From: Oculina patagonica
Lineage: Eukaryota
Direction of reading: 5' to 3'
Length of the DNA stretch: 64,000 nt
Assembly: GCF_052425735.1 (NCBI RefSeq)
Contig: NC_135763.1
Location: 310,001-374,000, forward strand
Positions 10,732-52,620 of this stretch are shown one piece after another (within the stretch, counting starts at the first letter, position 1; every line of letters starts with the position of its first letter). A model generated the notes under the pieces. It did not search any database. It was not told where the DNA came from and was given only the letters and a program-made list of their open reading frames with translations. A program made the translations under genes and the position numbers.

Positions 10732-25649
<14,918 letters not shown>

Positions 25650-26746: not shown

Positions 26747-26897
26747 CATGGAGCTTTTCTATTTACACTCTGCGCACGATATCGGTGTCTTACTTTAAAA
26801 AAAAATTGTATTATTTAAAGACTGCATGCTGCTGGGTTGTACGTTTTATGTTTTGTTGATGTATTTACAGCTTCGTAAAGGAAAAAGTGGAAGAAAA

Positions 26898-27007
26898 AAA
26901 AACTGGGGGTGGCTAGCCCTTTGGATTTCACCAAGCCGTTCCAAGTCAGGAGGCCCGCTAGGTATCTCCCATTCGCTACGGCTTTAGTATGCGGGATCAG
27001 AGATCCC
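26898..27007 (-). ncRNA. Divergent U6-like Pol III small nuclear RNA, copy 1
   Basis: 105 nt + T9 terminator; 104/105 identical to 48298-48402. Has a 5' hairpin GGGAUC/GAUCCC, AUACUAAA, GAGA-N5-AGC, an ISL-like hairpin and AAAUCC; TATA at about -24 to -32. Confidence 0.75.
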
Positions 27008-27030
27008 AGTAATTTGCTTTTCTTACGCGA

Positions 27031-27283
27031 TATATAAATCATTTCGTCTACGAAGCATCATCCATGTGGGGTGCGGTAAATAGTTACTCATTAACTTAAC
27101 TCTGTCTGAAGGCGTGTAAAAGTTGTTGATATTGCTTATCATTTTATTATAATTTGTTTTTTAATATCCTTGTAATGACAGCTAGCTGCAATAAAAATAA
27201 GAAAACAAAACAGTTTTCTTCCTGATACGCATGCGCAGTGTATCAAGAAGGTCGAATCAGCTAATTAAATATGCAAGAGAGTT
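27031..27283 (-). promoter_or_regulatory. Type 3 Pol III (U6-type) promoter: TATA, PSE-like and DSE-like blocks
   Basis: TTTATATA at about -30. Block catccat.tgg...aatagttact.at.aactt.actc from about -51. Distal TACGCATGCGCA and GCTAATTAAATATGCAAGAGAGTT (octamer-like). The PSE-like and distal blocks recur upstream of copy 2. Confidence 0.7.
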
Positions 27284-43124: not shown

Positions 43125-46100
43125 TCACATGGTCATTGGCTCTAACACAGTAATGACGTCACTCATTGTTGAGCGCTTGGTCGGATCCTTTGCAATGCAC
43201 TGTTCAGCTAAATCTCTTAGATTTTTGTTCCACATCAATGCAATTTGTTTCTCTCTTTCATCAGGATTCGGTGTTTGGTTGGTGCACAGTTCACAAAGAA
43301 GCACACCAAAACTGTAGACGTCGATCTGTTTGGGAGAAAAAAAAGACAAAGAGAAGAATAAGTAAAATGTTTGCCATTATTGAGTCACACACTGAAGGGC
43401 GTTTCTTAATATCGACATTCAGGCGAGTACTTCTTTAGTGTGAAAATGTTACACTCATCATTTCCGTGTATGGCCGTGTTGCCATTGGCCGATACTCAAT
43501 TATAGTCCTTGAATTGATTGAGAGAGGCACTGTGTGAGTTAGCACAAACAGTGACCTCAGCTTGTGCTCTAATCTCGATCTGTAGGTCTTAATTAAATCC
43601 AACGCACAAAATCGAAGGATTTTTTTCTTCCAAGTCTCCTTGGCGCCAAGGAGACTACAGTTAAATTCCGATAACTCAAACCACCCGGTAACTCGAGCCT
43701 ACCTTTAACTTCCCCTTTAGGTCACTTTCGTACTAATTTTACCCTCGATAACTTGAACTTCCGATAATTCGAACCTTTCTCAATTTCCCTTGAAAGTTCA
43801 AGTTATCAGGATTCAACTGTACTTTAGGGTGTTTTCTGATAACAACGATAAACCTATGACGTCATAAGATCCAAAATGGCGACGCGCGCCAAATGTTAAG
43901 CTCAACTTGGTTAATATTTGAATCCAACTTTCAACGAAACTCGGGAGCCCATTACCCTGTCGCGACAATTTATTCCAACTTATGTAGATTTCCGGCTATA
44001 ATAAAACAGTGGATTGTGCTTTGCATGGTAAATAATTGTTTGGCGTTTCAAAAAAAGGACTTCCTACCTTAGGGGACTGGTGCGAGCTGCTCGCCTCTGG
44101 AGCCGAGTAGAACGGATTGCCCGGATTTTCTGACATCTTGCTCCCCATGAACTCCGCTGATCCAAAATCGCAGAGTTTCCCGCGCCATTTGTCGCCTTGT
44201 CGCCAAACCATGACGTTGCCGCTGTTGACGTCACGATGCAGTATGGGATTGGGTCGAAAGCAGTGAAGGTAGTTGAGTCCGTAAGCCACATCAAGCGCTA
44301 GTACTCTGATGTATCTATTGCCTAAAGTTTTTTCATCCCTCACCAGCTGCGAGAGAGACATGTCCATGAGCTCTGCAACCAACAAAGGCTTACTAGAACG
44401 GTATTCCGCCACAGCCAAGAATTGTAAAATGCACGGATGTCTCACTAACGTAGCAAATGTGATTTCGCGATCGAACAGGAGTCTGTTGTGTGCAGACTGA
44501 ATGATTTCGTGGATTTCTTTCACTGCCACTTTTGTGCCTCGAAAATTCCCTTCCACAACTCTTCCCCACGCGCCAGTACCTAGAACCTTGTCAGAAAGTT
44601 TAATTTCATCTTTCGTGACCATCCACGGCTGTTCCCCGCGAAAAATGTCGGTAGTTTGACGAGCTCTTTCGATTTCGTGTTCTAAGACGCGAGCCCGTCT
44701 TTGATGTGTTTCTACATCCGCTTCAGCGCGTTGCAAACGTTCTTCACACGCACGCTTCTCGTCACGTAACGTATCGTACGCGCTTCGTTGTGCCCTACGC
44801 TCATCCTGCCATTGTTTCTCTAGTCGATCCAAGCGGTCAGAAGTCCCTTTCCTTGATTTCTCTAGAGTCTCCAAAGTTCTGTCTTTCTCAAAAAGGAGGT
44901 TGTCTTTTCGTCTTAGTTGCTCTCGGAGCTCACCACGTTCATCATTTGCCTGTCTCAAAGCCTGTTCCTTTTCTGTTAATCTAATCTCTATGTTTCCAAG
45001 GTACGCCAGGCCTCTCTCTTTCTCTCTGTTTAACCTGTCAACTGAAAACTTTCGTTCCAGGCTAATCTTGTCATTTTCTCTTTTCTCCTGCTGCAAAGTT
45101 TCTTTCTCGCGCTTGAGTGAGTTAATTTCATGATCTCTGGCCTTGAGGGTGTTTATTTTTTCTTGTATTTGTAGCTTGAATCGCTCGTTTTCCCTTCTAA
45201 TGGATTCGAGTTCGACTCTGGTATCTAAATCAGAGCTAAGTGCACTTGCGGAATGATGAGTCTTGTTCAGCTTTTTATTGTTCATGTTCTCCATCGCACT
45301 CTGCATTTCTTTCACGATCTCTTCTTGCTCGGCTAGCTGTTTTCTCAACAGTTCAGCATTTTCGTTTGCTTCTCTAAACAAACGTTCCTTTTCTCTCAGC
45401 TCGGACTCTTTCTCCTCGATCCGTTGCGTGAAAACCTGCATTTTCTCATGAAAAGACTGAATGACAAACTCTTTTCCTTCAATGACCTGCTCTTTTTCCT
45501 CAATTCGTTCCAAATGACGTTCTCGTTCATTTGTTAAACGATCGAGAATTTCCTTGCCCTTAGATAGAATTTCATTTTTTCCGTGTAGTTCAATTAACAA
45601 ATGCTTCATTTTTATTTTCATGGCCTTCTTCTTACGAGGAATTTGCTTTTCCAAGAATTCTTCGGAAAGTTCTTCATCTCCTTTGTTGGGACTCTCCGCT
45701 TTTAATTTTTCCCGCTTCTTCTCTTTCTTTGGTTTGGCTTTTGCCATCGGCTTGTCACGTGACTCTTCAACATCCGGAATTCCTGAAGGTGCAGTGTTTT
45801 CTTCATTCTCGTTGTCCACAATTTGGAAAGTTCTTTCAACGTCTAAAGAATCTTGTGAATTAAATTCTGGTACTTCTCCTATTCTTTCGAGCTCTTTTAT
45901 ACTCTGAAAAATATGAAATAATATGGATGGATTTAAAATCGAGAAATGGTTGACATGTTTAAGATTGGGGTAGTGTTTTAACGAACGCACACGTATTCCG
46001 TGACAGCCGACAGCCGGAAATGCGTCTGTGTGTTTTATGTAAACCGTTTGTTTACTTGCTAATTAATTTAATTTTCACAATAAAATGGAAAAAACTTTTC

Positions 46101-46932: not shown

Positions 46933-48292
46933 GGTTGACTTCTGATTGCAGCGGAAAAATCACAACTTTCAAATTCTTTAACAAAACCGATTCAAGTCGG
47001 CGAAGGCTTATGACCAGGAGTCCAATTCAGTTGAAACACGCATAAACTTCTGTTGATTCTCTTCCACTAAAACAGCAGATCTAGACAAAGTTAAATCGTC
47101 TTCTCGTCGGGATAGGAGAACGTACGCCAGACTGAACAAACCAAAGGCATGAACTCTGTTCTTAGCGGAAATTCGTTCTGCGTTCGCAGGCTACTTATTA
47201 TTCAACCGCTTTCTTTCCCTGGCTGAGTTACCAATAACAAAACAACCTGCTCACGTGTAAATTATGCATTGTGAAGCTCAATTCATGCTCAAAATACACG
47301 CTACGTAATCAGGATAAAGACAATAAATGATAATTAACTGCTAAAGACAACAGAACAGCACTCAAGCGGCAAGTCACAAGACTCCTGATTTCACTGCCAC
47401 TTCCTTTGATGTCACTAAGTTTACTTTTACCGCCTACTTTCGAAGTACTCTTTTAGAGAACTACCTTCCGTTGCAAAACAGAACAGAGCACAAAAAAGAA
47501 CATTTCCCGTCTTAGTTAAGGCCTATAACAGGTCGAGTACGTTAAGAGTTGAGAAACCAGTTCCAAGCTGATAGTTGCACGTTTTGCAGGAGTTTCTTAA
47601 GCATTTTTTGAGGCGCTTATACAACTGATGAAAATAACTCCACTGACAAAAGTTCTCCTGAATTAACAAAAGTTCTTGGCCGATGCAAGTTTGTCGACCG
47701 ATATAATATAAAAACGACTGAGCACACAGAGTTTCTCAGGCATTTTTATAAGCCAATTAAAACTGTCATTTACATTTCTTGACTTATTTCAAACGACTTG
47801 GTTAACTTAAGTAGACTAAGTAAACAGAGCAGGAGTATCTCAGGTATTTTAATAACACAATGAAATTTTCTTCCCTGAACTTAGACAGCGACAGAAAGAA
47901 GGCGGGGCGCGCGCGCGTGCGGGGAGGTGGGGGGGGGGGGGAGGGAAGGCTTTAAATAAAAAGCAGTAGATCCCTCTATTTTTCTCGCCTCTCAAACTCC
48001 ACTAGCTTCCACCCCCGCGCACTTCCGCCTCTGCGCTCGCGTCCAGTCCTCCCGCGATTCTTTTGGCGGACCAGTTGATGATCGAAAAAAACGGAAACAA
48101 AGAGAGCTGCGGGCGGTCTACAACTAACATAAAAATTCTCAATCGATGAAAGATTCCCGACAATCCAAAACAGTATTTTGCTATCGTGCTGCTTAATACA
48201 GCAAAAATTGTATGTGAAGACTGCTGCTGTAAAAATTATTTATTTACTACAAATTATTTATTTACAACAGTCTCGAAAAGAAGAAAAATAAA

Positions 48293-48402
48293 AAAAACTG
48301 GGGGTGGCTAGCCCTTCGGATTTCACCAAGCCGTTCCAAGTCAGGAGGCCCGCTAGGTATCTCCCATTCGCTACGGCTTTAGTATGCGGGATCAGAGATC
48401 CC
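48293..48402 (-). ncRNA. Divergent U6-like Pol III small nuclear RNA, copy 2
   Basis: GGGAUCUCUGAUCCCGCAUACUAAAGCCGUAGCGAAUGGGAGAUACCUAGCGGGCCUCCUGACUUGGAACGGCUUGGUGAAAUCCGAAGGGCUAGCCACCCCCAG + T8; one substitution relative to copy 1. Confidence 0.75.
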
Positions 48403-48424: not shown

Positions 48425-48667
48425 CTTTTTAACCATTCAGTTCAAGCAGCGCCATCCATATGGTAGTTGTTTAATAGTTACTTATAAACTTGACTCATTA
48501 AAGAGCCATATTAAAGTTGTTATTTTTGCCAACCTTCATTATTGGACCTTTTACAACAACAATATGCCGAATTTCAGCAAAACAGAACGATGACTAGTTC
48601 TTACCAATACGCATGCGCATTATTCGTCTGGACGCTCAAGTGGGCTAATTAAATATGCAAGAGAGTT
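48425..48667 (-). promoter_or_regulatory. Type 3 Pol III promoter of copy 2
   Basis: TTAAAAAG at about -30, PSE-like block from about -51, TACGCATGCGCA at 48608-48619 and GCTAATTAAATATGCAAGAGAGTT at 48644-48667. Confidence 0.7.
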
Positions 48668-49615: not shown

Positions 49616-52138
49616 CTACAAGGTGGCTGTTCTTCCATTTATCGTCACAAGTCCCTGAGCTCGCAGAGACTCAGCTTGTTGAGTCAACACTAAAATGACG
49701 TCACTGATAGCTGGACGCGCCTCAGGGTCCCTCATGACACAACGCATAATGAGCTCTCGGAGGACACCGTTAGTTACCAGGCCTATCTGTTCTTGGATCT
49801 GCTGCGGGACCGGAAGTTCTCTGATACACATCTCGCACAACAATAAACCGAAACTGTAAACATCAGCCTGGAAAATAATACATGAGAAACAAACAGTTTT
49901 TGGATGAAAGATGGACGAATAAAAGGAATTTTCCTCAAAAGGACAATTGTTGTATGATCTACTAATCAAATTGATATAAGTAGGAAAAAGGAGGAATCTG
50001 AAAAATGACTCAGTAGAGGAGACTGAAGTCCATTTCAGTTAAAATTGGGAAATTCACGTAGGGCAGCGAAGAAAAAAAACCGCACTACTAAAACAGCGTA
50101 AATTTTGTCCAAGCGCATATTATGCGCTTGAACGAGTGTTGTTGTTTTTTTATATGGAATAGAGTCATGTAAAAAGGCCGCAATTTGCCACAAATAATTC
50201 TGGTTTTCAATCCCGAAGCTCTACCTCTCTTCCGTTTTCCGTTATTTTATACTAACATTAACTACATTCTCACAACTTACTTGCATTAATTTGTTATAAA
50301 AAAGAATCTCTTAGTTATTCATGCTTGCGATTAAAGCGTTACAGAGGAGACGTTTCTTTAGCCCATCACGCAGTCTTTTCCCTAACGAAAAAGGTAAGAT
50401 TGGGTGGCTGGCCAACAATTTTCAGATATTTTATAATCACCTTTGGCGACTGTTGAGAAGTGAGAGCCTCAGGCGCGGCATAAATCCTCGCTCCTGGATT
50501 GACCGTCATGTACTGGCGCATGAAATTTGCCGCTCCATAATCTGACAGCTTGGCCCTCCAACTGTCATCCCGTCTCCATAGCAACACGTTGGAACTACTG
50601 ATGTCTCTATGCATGATGGGAAAAGGCTTATTTAGATGGAGATAATTAAGTCCTCGAGCGACATCCAAAGCGAGGCAAATGATCTCTTCCTGATGTAATG
50701 CACGCTGAGTTAAAACGTTCCTCAAATCTGTATCAAGCAGCTCGGTTACAAACAATGGGCTTCCATCATCATTAGTCGCACCAATAAACTGTAACAGATG
50801 AGGGTGCCGACACCGTGACGCAATGCTCATTTCCCGCTCAAAAAGTCTGCGATTGTGAGGCGAGAGAATAAGCTCGTGAATTTGCTTTACTGCAACTTGA
50901 CAGCCGCGAAACATTCCTTCGTACACCTTGCCCCAGGCCCCTACACCTAAACTGTTTTCACTCAGAGTCACTTCCTCGCGTCGAATGATCCAATCACGTG
51001 GTTCGAGGCGCTGATACTCGGCCAAGGTCTCTTGCGCAGCAGACACCGCTGATTGTAACTCTCGCAGGCGTCGGTCGCTTTCGGACGCAGTTCTTTCGCT
51101 GTCGCGGATGCGTTGTTCATAGTGCTCGCGCTCTCGTTCCAGGTTTTCTCGATCTTGCTGTAAGGTTCCTCTTTCCTCAGTGAGTTCTCTCTCTCTAGAC
51201 ATGCGTCTGCTCCTTTCTTGCTCCAGTTCAGTCTGTACGCTCCTCAGTCTGTCCTGTAAGTTCGTCTTCTGTTCACGTTCTAGCTGCAAGAGCCGTAACT
51301 GTTCCGCAATAGTGTCCTCTTTCGCTTGAACATCTTCTCGGCTGGACTGACTTGACAACCGTTCATTTTCTAGTCTTCTCTCTAACTCAGTACAAGCACT
51401 TCTAGCTTGGCGTAGCTCCTCTTCAACTCTCAATCTCGCTTGTTGCTCTTCGCCCAAAGTTCCTTGTAATCCATGGAAGTTTGTCTCTTTTTCTCTTAGC
51501 TGTTGTTCTCTCATGTTACGTACTGTTTTCTCTTCATCAAGCGCCCGCCGAACCCGCACAAGATCACTCTGAACTTTACGCAAATGAGCATTTGCTTCAC
51601 GTTCTTGTTCAAGCTCGTTTTGAATCTGCCGTACAGAAACTCGTTCTTGTTCCAGCTCATTAGATAACAAGGCTAAATTAACAGTTTGTTGAGTTAAGGT
51701 GTGATCTTTTTCTGTCAAAGCGTTTTCTAAAACTCGGATTCTTTCATACAGACGTTCCTGATCGGCCGAATAACCAATCTCTAAATCTCTTATCCGCCCA
51801 AGTTGGCGATCTTTCTCCTCTTCCATTTCTTGTAGCTTTCCTCTTTCTATTTCCAGAAGTTTTTGGTGTTGCTGTAAGTTTTCTCTTTGTTCCTTGCTGT
51901 GCTGATCGAGTAGCGTGATATGTGACTCCATTTCTTTATGGTGAAGTAGAATATCTGGTTTAACAGGTTCAGAGCCGGTTGCTACAGCGTTGTCACTGTT
52001 TGTGACATCCGAGGCTTTCCGTCGCCTGCTTCTTGTTTGTATCGCGGTGTCTGCTGGGTCATTTTTTTGCTCCTTCGTTCGTTCCTCCAAACATTCGGAT
52101 TCAGTGTTGTTGGTAGCACTGGAAGGAGAGGCTGGCAT
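49616..52138 (-). CDS. Coiled-coil + C-terminal TKL-type Ser/Thr protein kinase (paralog B)
   Basis: Exons 52138-50441 and 49867-49616; a possible upstream in-frame exon lies at 52515-52466. Motifs LGVGAWG, VAVK, HRDISSSN, DYG, YAAPE, DVYSFG. The intron after 'SPK' is at the same position as in paralog A. Confidence 0.88.
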
Positions 52139-52620
52139 TTTGGCCTGAAAGTTCAAAAGAAACACACTGCAAAGTCTCAATACGTTCAAAATCTAAGTTT
52201 TGAGAACTTTTTAAAAGATCAAGGCAGTGTCCCAACTTGTCAGCTTGAAAATGTATTGACCTTCCCTCAGTTTACGGAATCCGAAACTCAAGAGCCTGCT
52301 CGCAGGCTATTGCAACTACGAAGTTCGAGGGCTTACTTGCTAGATTTGAGGAAAATGTATGGTGAACTGCATGTAAGGCTAAATTTTGAAGTAGAATTAC
52401 GCCAAGCACTGTTTTCAATTGCAGCGTGGCTTATGCAGTAAAGATAACCACATCAAATCACTTACCGGAGCAGACTTTGATCTATCTGTGAAGAGCTTTT
52501 TACGAGCGTGTTTGCCTGTATAGACAAAACAGACAATACTTAACTGTGCTCAGGTATTAGCAAAGTTATTCGTTTTTTAAAGAAACTATTGCGCTTTGGC
52601 AGGCACAGGCAAATTTGGAC

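Follow-up and report, generated by a model that had tools for sequence, protein, structure and literature searches.

A conserved 105-nucleotide RNA gene of stony corals with likeness to U6

The stretch analysed here (the window) comprises 64,000 nucleotides (nt) of the Oculina patagonica genome, positions 310,001 to 374,000 of contig NC_135763.1 (NCBI RefSeq assembly GCF_052425735.1), and carries two copies of a gene for a predicted 105-nt RNA that resembles the small nuclear RNA (snRNA) U6. The explanation we favour, at a probability of roughly 0.55, is that stony corals possess a genuine small-RNA gene family, absent from the database families, which arose as an old duplicate of U6 and now forms a third, separately conserved lineage of the U6 family. 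The RNA most likely keeps the geometry of the U6 core and not the segments through which U6 pairs with its partners. An earlier note, made from the letters of the window, had proposed the first copy as a candidate catalytic RNA of a variant spliceosome.

Gene copies, conservation and promoter

Nucleotides are numbered from G1 of the 105-nt RNA, feature coordinates are those of the window (Table 1), and both copies lie on the minus strand. The copies are spaced 21.4 kb apart and mismatch at one of the 105 nt. When they were aligned over 530 nt, identity started with the T at position -1, just before G1, and stopped after the T-run, and the flanks were about half identical (~55%). This 114-nt unit is the sole long repeat within 35 kb. 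The 529-Mb genome holds the 105-nt RNA at these two loci only; no further paralogue was found by BLAST (E ≤ 10) or with a sequence profile.

A degenerate pattern of the core pulled 11 contigs from coral metagenomes, and these were combined with the two genome copies into an alignment of 13 loci. Mean identity was 96% in the body, 48% in the spacer from -22 to -1 and 41% in the downstream flank, and a run of 7–9 T followed the conserved body directly in 13 of 13 loci. A body so much better conserved than its flanks is the mark of strong purifying selection on a predicted RNA with exactly the borders of the 105-nt unit. The central nt 17–64 were invariant in all 13 loci, save for U44A in one contig. 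Variation was confined to the loop of the 5' hairpin, linker position 16, position 44, loop position 65, positions 86 (A/G) and 92 (C/U) and the length of the C-run before the tail, all of which are loops, linkers or wobble-tolerant pairs. The unit occurs about twice per coral taxon, as it does in O. patagonica, and its body was also found in public runs labelled as at least seven other organisms, coral metagenomes included, in contigs that diverge on leaving the body. A search for more distant orthologues with a degenerate core pattern in viral contigs and contigs of prokaryote genomes gave chance matches only, none of which fits the profile.

The upstream region has the layout of a type 3 RNA polymerase III (Pol III) promoter, with a proximal sequence element (PSE) about 55–65 bp and a TATA box about 25–30 bp upstream, and termination at a run of at least four T. 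The distances equal those in U6: canonical U6 genes of the same genome carry the PSE word CCCACATGG at -64 and TATATA at -30, against -63 and -29 in copy 1. The motif CCCAYATGG was present at -62 to -64 in copy 1 and in 11 of 11 metagenome orthologues, and at -64 in two U6 genes (U6_a and U6_b); copy 2 has only the PSE-like CCATATGGATG in its place. The third U6 gene and both U6atac genes have a variant PSE, and the U4 and U4atac genes, which are of the Pol II type, carry CCCAYATGG at -58 and lack a TATA box. At the TATA place the orthologues read AATATAG, and contigs with copy-2-like flanks from two public runs read TAAAATAG or AATAG. Further upstream, a distal sequence element (DSE), the full 9-mer GCGCATGCG, was found at -215 to -238 in 11 of the 13 loci. 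Counting its core as well, the number rises to 12, with one locus (L037) carrying the 7-mer core GCATGCG only (-226) and another (L040) giving no match. The 9-mer also stands upstream of one U6 gene (U6_c), one U6atac gene and U12, and the two other U6 genes have the core GCATGCG only. A motif search found none of the 24-nt block AACTCTCTTGCATATTTAATTAGC in other corals, and its role is uncertain. The combination of DSE, PSE, TATA box and T-run is, as a sequence pattern, the signature of a SNAPc-dependent Pol III gene, of the same design as the U6 genes of this genome, and the 105-nt RNA would be transcribed by Pol III through SNAPc.

Likeness to U6 and U6atac

The genome encodes canonical U6 (114 bits), U6atac (113 and 110 bits), U4, U4atac, U2 and U12. 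The earlier note had rested on a 36-nt stretch with 21 ungapped identities to U6, a count that was reproduced with the genome's own U6; taken alone this stretch is marginal, and 20 of 500 shuffles reached 21/36. A longer comparison along one ungapped diagonal (nt 10–69 of the candidate against U6 nt 16–75) gave 29/50 and 32/60 identities; in either case 1 of 500 dinucleotide shuffles did as well. The high-scoring segment pair (HSP) with U6 under low-identity log-odds scores had 18.7 bits, which 4 of 3000 dinucleotide shuffles matched, and the control HSP between U6atac and U6 had 17.2 bits, matched by 7 of 3000 shuffles. The same HSP test of the 105-nt RNA against U6atac, U4, U4atac, U2 and U12 gave nothing. 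Over the 44 nt that follow the shared AUACUAAA on the same diagonal, 21 are identical, compared with 26% expected (permutation p 0.0009), and a profile of the 105-nt RNA run over 56 kb of snRNA loci had its best three matches in the three U6 genes, all in the same register. By these measures the 105-nt RNA is statistically U6-like, its similarity to U6 being about as strong as that of U6atac, and descent from U6 is likely.

The shared features follow one another as in U6 (RF00026). Both RNAs start with G, have a 5' hairpin followed by AUACUAAA, are ~105 nt long and end in a U tail, and GAGA, UAGC and CCUG are collinear in the two. An AGC stands 5 nt after the box that corresponds to U6 ACAGAGA, and right after it the predicted fold forms a stem-loop with a 3' bulge, in the place of the internal stem-loop (ISL). 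The differences lie in the box itself, where ACAGAGA reads AUGGGAGA (the aligned heptamer being UGGGAGA, with only GAGA retained), in the helix Ia spacer, where AGAUU reads UACCU, and in the 3' third, which is unrelated to U6. Neither U4 stems I and II nor the 5' end of U2 has a complement in the 105-nt RNA, from which the ACA of ACAGAGA and all segments of U6 that base-pair to U4 or U2 are lost.

U6atac (RF00619) is likewise a divergent member of the U6 family that exists alongside U6, and its core has the same dimensions: GAGA, five nt, AGC, one nt, a lower stem of 4 bp, an upper stem of 3 bp and a 2-nt 3' bulge AC. The ISL of the coral U6atac (4 + 3 bp, -4.3 kcal/mol) has the bracket topology and the AC bulge of the hairpin in the 105-nt RNA. 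Beyond these core words the 105-nt RNA shows no sequence likeness to the coral U6atac, and it lacks the 15-bp duplex with U4atac, a 5' splice-site box of the CCGAGAGA/AAGGAGAGA type and the long 3' stem-loop.

Within the predicted structure, the stem of the 5' hairpin is invariant and its loop reads UCU, UCC, CCC, CCUGC or CCUAC across corals. When nt 49–76 were folded as an excised piece (-10.0 kcal/mol), two extra pairs formed below the lower stem of the ISL-shaped hairpin (C51-G76 and G52-U75). The sole variant within this hairpin, U65A, sits in the loop, and the 3' AC bulge is five base pairs from AGC. The AGC (nt 49–51) can pair with nt 91–93 of the same RNA, which read GUU or GCU; the pair between G50 and position 92 is G-U in seven distinct sequences and G-C in two.

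Domain V of group II introns, with the motif AGCCGUA.GCGA, is the functional analogue of the U2/U6 core. The 105-nt RNA resembles it in that its AGC can be closed within the molecule by nt 91–93, with a 2-nt 3' bulge five pairs above. It differs in that the closing strand is non-contiguous, lying 15 nt past the hairpin, and Rfam Intron_gpII gave no score on the piece. We rejected membership in domain V and keep the likeness as an analogy only.

The features named in the earlier note could all be found in the sequence: a minus-strand RNA of 105 nt followed by nine T, the 5' hairpin, AUACUAAA, GAGA, the AGC exactly 5 nt on and the bulged hairpin. Canonical U6 and U6atac genes, which it had asked to be confirmed, exist elsewhere in the genome. 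Two of its points did not hold. It had foreseen weak or partial matches to the Rfam models of U6 and U6atac, of which there were none, gapped alignment being blind to the likeness as well. It had also compared the hairpin loop with a UGACA loop, which we take to be that of human U6atac; the loop of the coral U6atac is CGAUA, and what is shared instead is the topology and the 3' AC bulge.

A separate group of U6-variant genes was observed at C5:15.644-15.664 Mb (L016, L017, L019 and L022). They match U6 exactly over their first 72 nt and then continue into an A-rich 3' part that is unrelated to it. Upstream they carry PSE-like and TATA-like sequence of their own, and the Rfam U6 model scores them at 71–73 bits.

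Partner searches and competing explanations

Pairing of the 105-nt RNA with U4, U4atac, U2, U12, U6 and U6atac gave best contiguous helices of 7–10 bp, inside the range of shuffled sequences. The cognate controls stood out in the same test, with 11 of 200 shuffles for U6/U4 and 0 of 200 for U6atac/U4atac (15 bp, -26.6 kcal/mol). With U4atac the best helices of the 105-nt RNA had 7–8 bp (-11.1 and -12.7 kcal/mol), well short of the long duplex of U6atac. Full-length RNAduplex was uninformative, as it allows large loops. No near-complement of nt 52–72 was found elsewhere in the genome (21-mer complement, up to 3 mismatches), and three patterns combining a PSE with a complement found no PSE-driven gene that opens with 12 nt able to form Watson-Crick or wobble pairs with nt 51–70. 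The identical design built from U6atac recovered the U4atac gene. No extra divergent U4atac or U12 was seen in the genome, and among genes with a distal element and a PSE there was no unknown snRNA-like partner: these comprised copy 1, one U4 gene, hammerhead repeats and three unexplained loci. Since the searches assume a canonical U4-like design, they make an RNA of a variant spliceosome less probable and do not disprove it.

Several loci came to light in these searches. Besides U4atac, the control pattern matched only L069 (C1:9040070-9040145), where 12 nt that could pair with the U6atac ISL, wobbles included, come 55 nt after a PSE word; this is probably a chance match. Repeats with the words GCGCATGCG and CCCATATGG were found at C4:44.118 Mb (L072), C5:29.242 Mb (L073) and C10:20.415 Mb (L075). 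The first two contain type I hammerhead ribozymes (36–39 bits) and the third is the same repeat without a match at the gathering threshold; all three are probably retrozyme-like repeats and not snRNA genes. At C8:14.3617 Mb (L078), a tRNA-shaped sequence with GGTTCGAATCC and a long T-run lies ~250 nt downstream of a DSE and PSE pair, and no Rfam family matched it at E ≤ 0.1.

Of the proposal in the earlier note, a distinct, conserved U6-like gene is supported and a catalytic RNA of a variant spliceosome is not, with no pairing above chance and no partner gene found in these searches. In its full form the proposal would make the 105-nt RNA the catalytic U6-type snRNA of a third spliceosome, with its own U4-like chaperone and U2-like partner, acting on a distinct class of 5' splice sites through the CGAAUGG upstream of GAGA. 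The core geometry shared with the coral U6atac speaks for it, as do the central 48 nt that are invariant bar one base in one contig, a likeness to U6 as strong as that of U6atac, and the fact that the altered segments are those that pair with partners, just as between U6 and U6atac. We nevertheless give it little credence. Added to the negative partner searches, the RNA has lost the ACA with which U6 reads the 5' splice site, its spacer UACCU is unable to pair with U2 or U12 as helix Ia, and recognisers of the 5' splice site and the branch site would also be needed, of which none are known. There is also a version with a single RNA, in which the 105-nt RNA would itself give both strands of the U2/U6 active-site helix, with AGC (nt 49–51) closed by nt 91–93 and with GAGA and the AC-bulged hairpin in the geometry of U6atac; if so, no U4- or U2-like partner would be needed. 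Either form of a catalytic core RNA, the third-spliceosome type or the single-RNA type, seems to us a long shot.

Our preferred explanation is a duplicated and diverged U6. An old copy of U6 would have diverged while staying collinear with its parent over the part that runs from 5' hairpin to internal stem-loop. The RNA is predicted to be capped, and its U tail bound, like that of U6 (by La and then Lsm2-8), which is probable, and it would reside in a nuclear ribonucleoprotein (RNP) of its own, in which the invariant nt 17–64 are held by proteins and/or by further RNA. The strand that closes its AGC in a helix could come from nt 91–95 of the same RNA or from the GCUA of U2, which would allow a U6-like core fold without a U4-type chaperone. 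A catalytic role is speculative.

A number of results weigh against this explanation. Rfam U6 and U6atac had no match to the locus at gathering threshold, nor at E ≤ 10 on a 701-nt or a 114-nt piece, and the locus is neither on the genome-wide U6 list nor among the 26 U6atac matches at E ≤ 10. On the window, the two pieces and the orthologous contigs Rfam returned no relevant family, only chance matches to Ocean-VII and MIMT1. Gapped local and semi-global alignments to U6, U6atac, U4 and U4atac were not significant, and the matches of the profile to the U6 genes reached only 4.5 bits (E about 0.9). A rival fold pairing nt 24–42 with nt 57–75 is more stable than the U6-like fold (-34.0 vs -31.2 kcal/mol). 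The 13-locus alignment contains no compensatory covariation, the RNA hardly varying, and does not separate the ISL-like fold from the rival. AGC occurs four times in the 105-nt RNA, which makes one AGC at 5 nt after GAGA less striking. Finally, the contigs from public runs continue into the promoter and flanks and show the presence of DNA, not of a transcript.

A rival reading is an orphan, lineage-specific Pol III RNA unrelated to U6. Its promoter type would be the one expected for any SNAPc gene, and its likeness to U6 would be due to chance or to convergence on shared proteins, through the capping signal and La or Lsm binding. The missing Rfam match and the non-significant gapped alignment favour it, and so does the most stable fold, a series of three plain hairpins in which GAGA and AGC sit close to the top of the middle one; UAGC words are abundant, so an AGC near GAGA is not rare. 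We regard this as unlikely, given an ungapped collinearity with a p of about 0.001 whether the 8-mer anchor is counted or not, the same register relative to the 5' hairpin, and a length and termination that match U6. The natural variants U65A and C92, moreover, break the alifold version of the rival fold and not the U6-like model, a weak argument in that no double-sided covariation accompanies it.

A coral counterpart of 7SK would be a short Pol III RNA with HEXIM on the GAUC/GAUC duplex of the 5' hairpin and LARP7 and MePCE at its ends, serving the regulation of P-TEFb. The hallmark of the HEXIM site is its GAUC motifs in the 5' hairpin, and what is conserved in 7SK is the hairpins at its 5' and 3' ends (PMC10083321). 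7SK evolves fast, and that of early-branching animals was unknown (PMC2655684). The 105-nt RNA starts with GG-GAUC-loop-GAUC-CC and, like 7SK, has a type-3 Pol III promoter and a 3' end that is structured ahead of the U tail. In addition, HEXIM (PF15313) is encoded at two loci of the genome (142.6 bits at L051, C7:3004056-3004478, and 69.7 bits at L052, C13:3520197-3520547), and an Rfam search of the genome found no 7SK. The GAUC/GAUC duplex is present and invariant, but it lies in a minimal 6-bp hairpin, capped by a loop of 3–5 nt, that lacks the flanking bulged U's. At 105 nt the RNA has about one third of the length of any described 7SK, its body is significantly U6-like, as that of 7SK is not, nothing in 7SK corresponds to its 37-nt invariant single strand, and Rfam RF00100 has no match on the piece. 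We consider a 7SK-like role possible but improbable.

The genome does contain U6 pseudogenes and U6-headed variants, which made a decaying U6 pseudogene or a retroposon resembling a short interspersed nuclear element (SINE) worth considering. With two loci only in the genome, the RNA is neither a SINE nor part of a dispersed pseudogene family. The copies lack a poly(A) tail and target-site duplications, both have promoters, copy 1 with conserved DSE, PSE and TATA elements of its own, and across corals the body is conserved at 96% while the flanks are saturated with change. We rejected this origin as highly improbable. The earlier note had argued for a distinct paralog rather than random decay, which the two genome copies and the conservation over 13 loci bear out, and it had named hundreds of degenerate copies with target site duplications as the sign of a SINE, which are not seen. 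ARAGORN found no tRNA or tRNA-like sequence in the window.

The genes around the two copies are ordinary, with two protein kinases, a tropomyosin and a transporter of the MFS family (Table 1). Beside a G11 run, the segment 26700-26746 of the window matched many contigs and had a word depth above 30,000 in one public run, indicating a high-copy repeat.

Table 1. Positions of the 105-nt RNA gene copies, their predicted elements and neighbouring open reading frames (ORFs) in the window
Feature	Position	Strand	Remarks
Copy 1 of 105-nt RNA	26903..27007	-	G1 = 27007, G105 = 26903; identity with copy 2 and orthologues begins at G1 and ends at T-run
T9 run, predicted Pol III terminator, copy 1	26894..26902	-	sequence
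5' hairpin GGGAUC-UCU-GAUCCC, nt 1–15	26993..27007	-	in every predicted fold
AUACUAAA, nt 18–25	26983..26990	-	identical to U6 nt 24–31; just 3' of 5' hairpin, as in U6
GGGAGA, nt 38–43	26965..26970	-	place of U6 ACAGAGA box; GAGA kept, ACA to UGG; invariant in 13 loci
AGC, nt 49–51	26957..26959	-	5 nt after GAGA, as in U6 and U6atac
ISL-shaped hairpin, nt 53–74	26934..26955	-	lower stem GGCC/GGCU, upper stem UCC/GGA, loop UGACUU, 3' bulge AC
3' domain, nt 76–100	26908..26932	-	hairpin (76–79/97–100 and 81–85/89–93) or nt 91–95 pairing nt 47–51; variable 86 and 92 inside
TATA box TTTATATAT, copy 1	27030..27038	-	TATATA at -29 to -24
PSE CCCACATGGATG, copy 1	27059..27070	-	-63 to -52; core word CCCACATGG at -63
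Distal element GCGCATGCG, copy 1	27228..27236	-	about -229
24-nt block AACTCTCTTGCATATTTAATTAGC	27253..27276	-	common to both copies; holds octamer-like TTGCAT
Copy 2 of 105-nt RNA	48298..48402	-	G1 = 48402; single difference from copy 1: nt 86 G vs A
T8 terminator, copy 2	48290..48297	-	sequence
Weak TATA-like TAAAAA, copy 2	48426..48431	-	motif at TATA place
PSE-like CCATATGGATG, copy 2	48453..48463	-	about -61
Distal element GCGCATGCG, copy 2	48610..48618	-	motif
Protein-kinase paralogues flanking copy 2	43996-45990 and 50366-52189	-	long ORFs
Tropomyosin and MFS transporter (transporter in two pieces)	30857-31846, 34412-35953	-	long ORFs
GIY-YIG domain ORF	16874-17620	+	long open frame

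Meaning of a probable third U6-type lineage

To our knowledge the U6 class of eukaryotes has two members only, U6 and U6atac, each of them defining a spliceosome. We found no published description of this sequence, of a third U6-type RNA or of a cnidarian 7SK in the literature searched. A third deeply conserved U6 lineage would raise the question of what else the U6 scaffold can do. The candidate roles are a specialised RNP for splicing or RNA processing, a regulator that competes for U6 proteins, and a 7SK-like function, each of which would be new biology in early-branching animals. A short, invariant RNA with a defined promoter is a ready object for experiment, and its promoter may serve for the expression of guide RNAs in corals. 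At the least, an unannotated, conserved, predicted Pol III gene is added to coral genomes.
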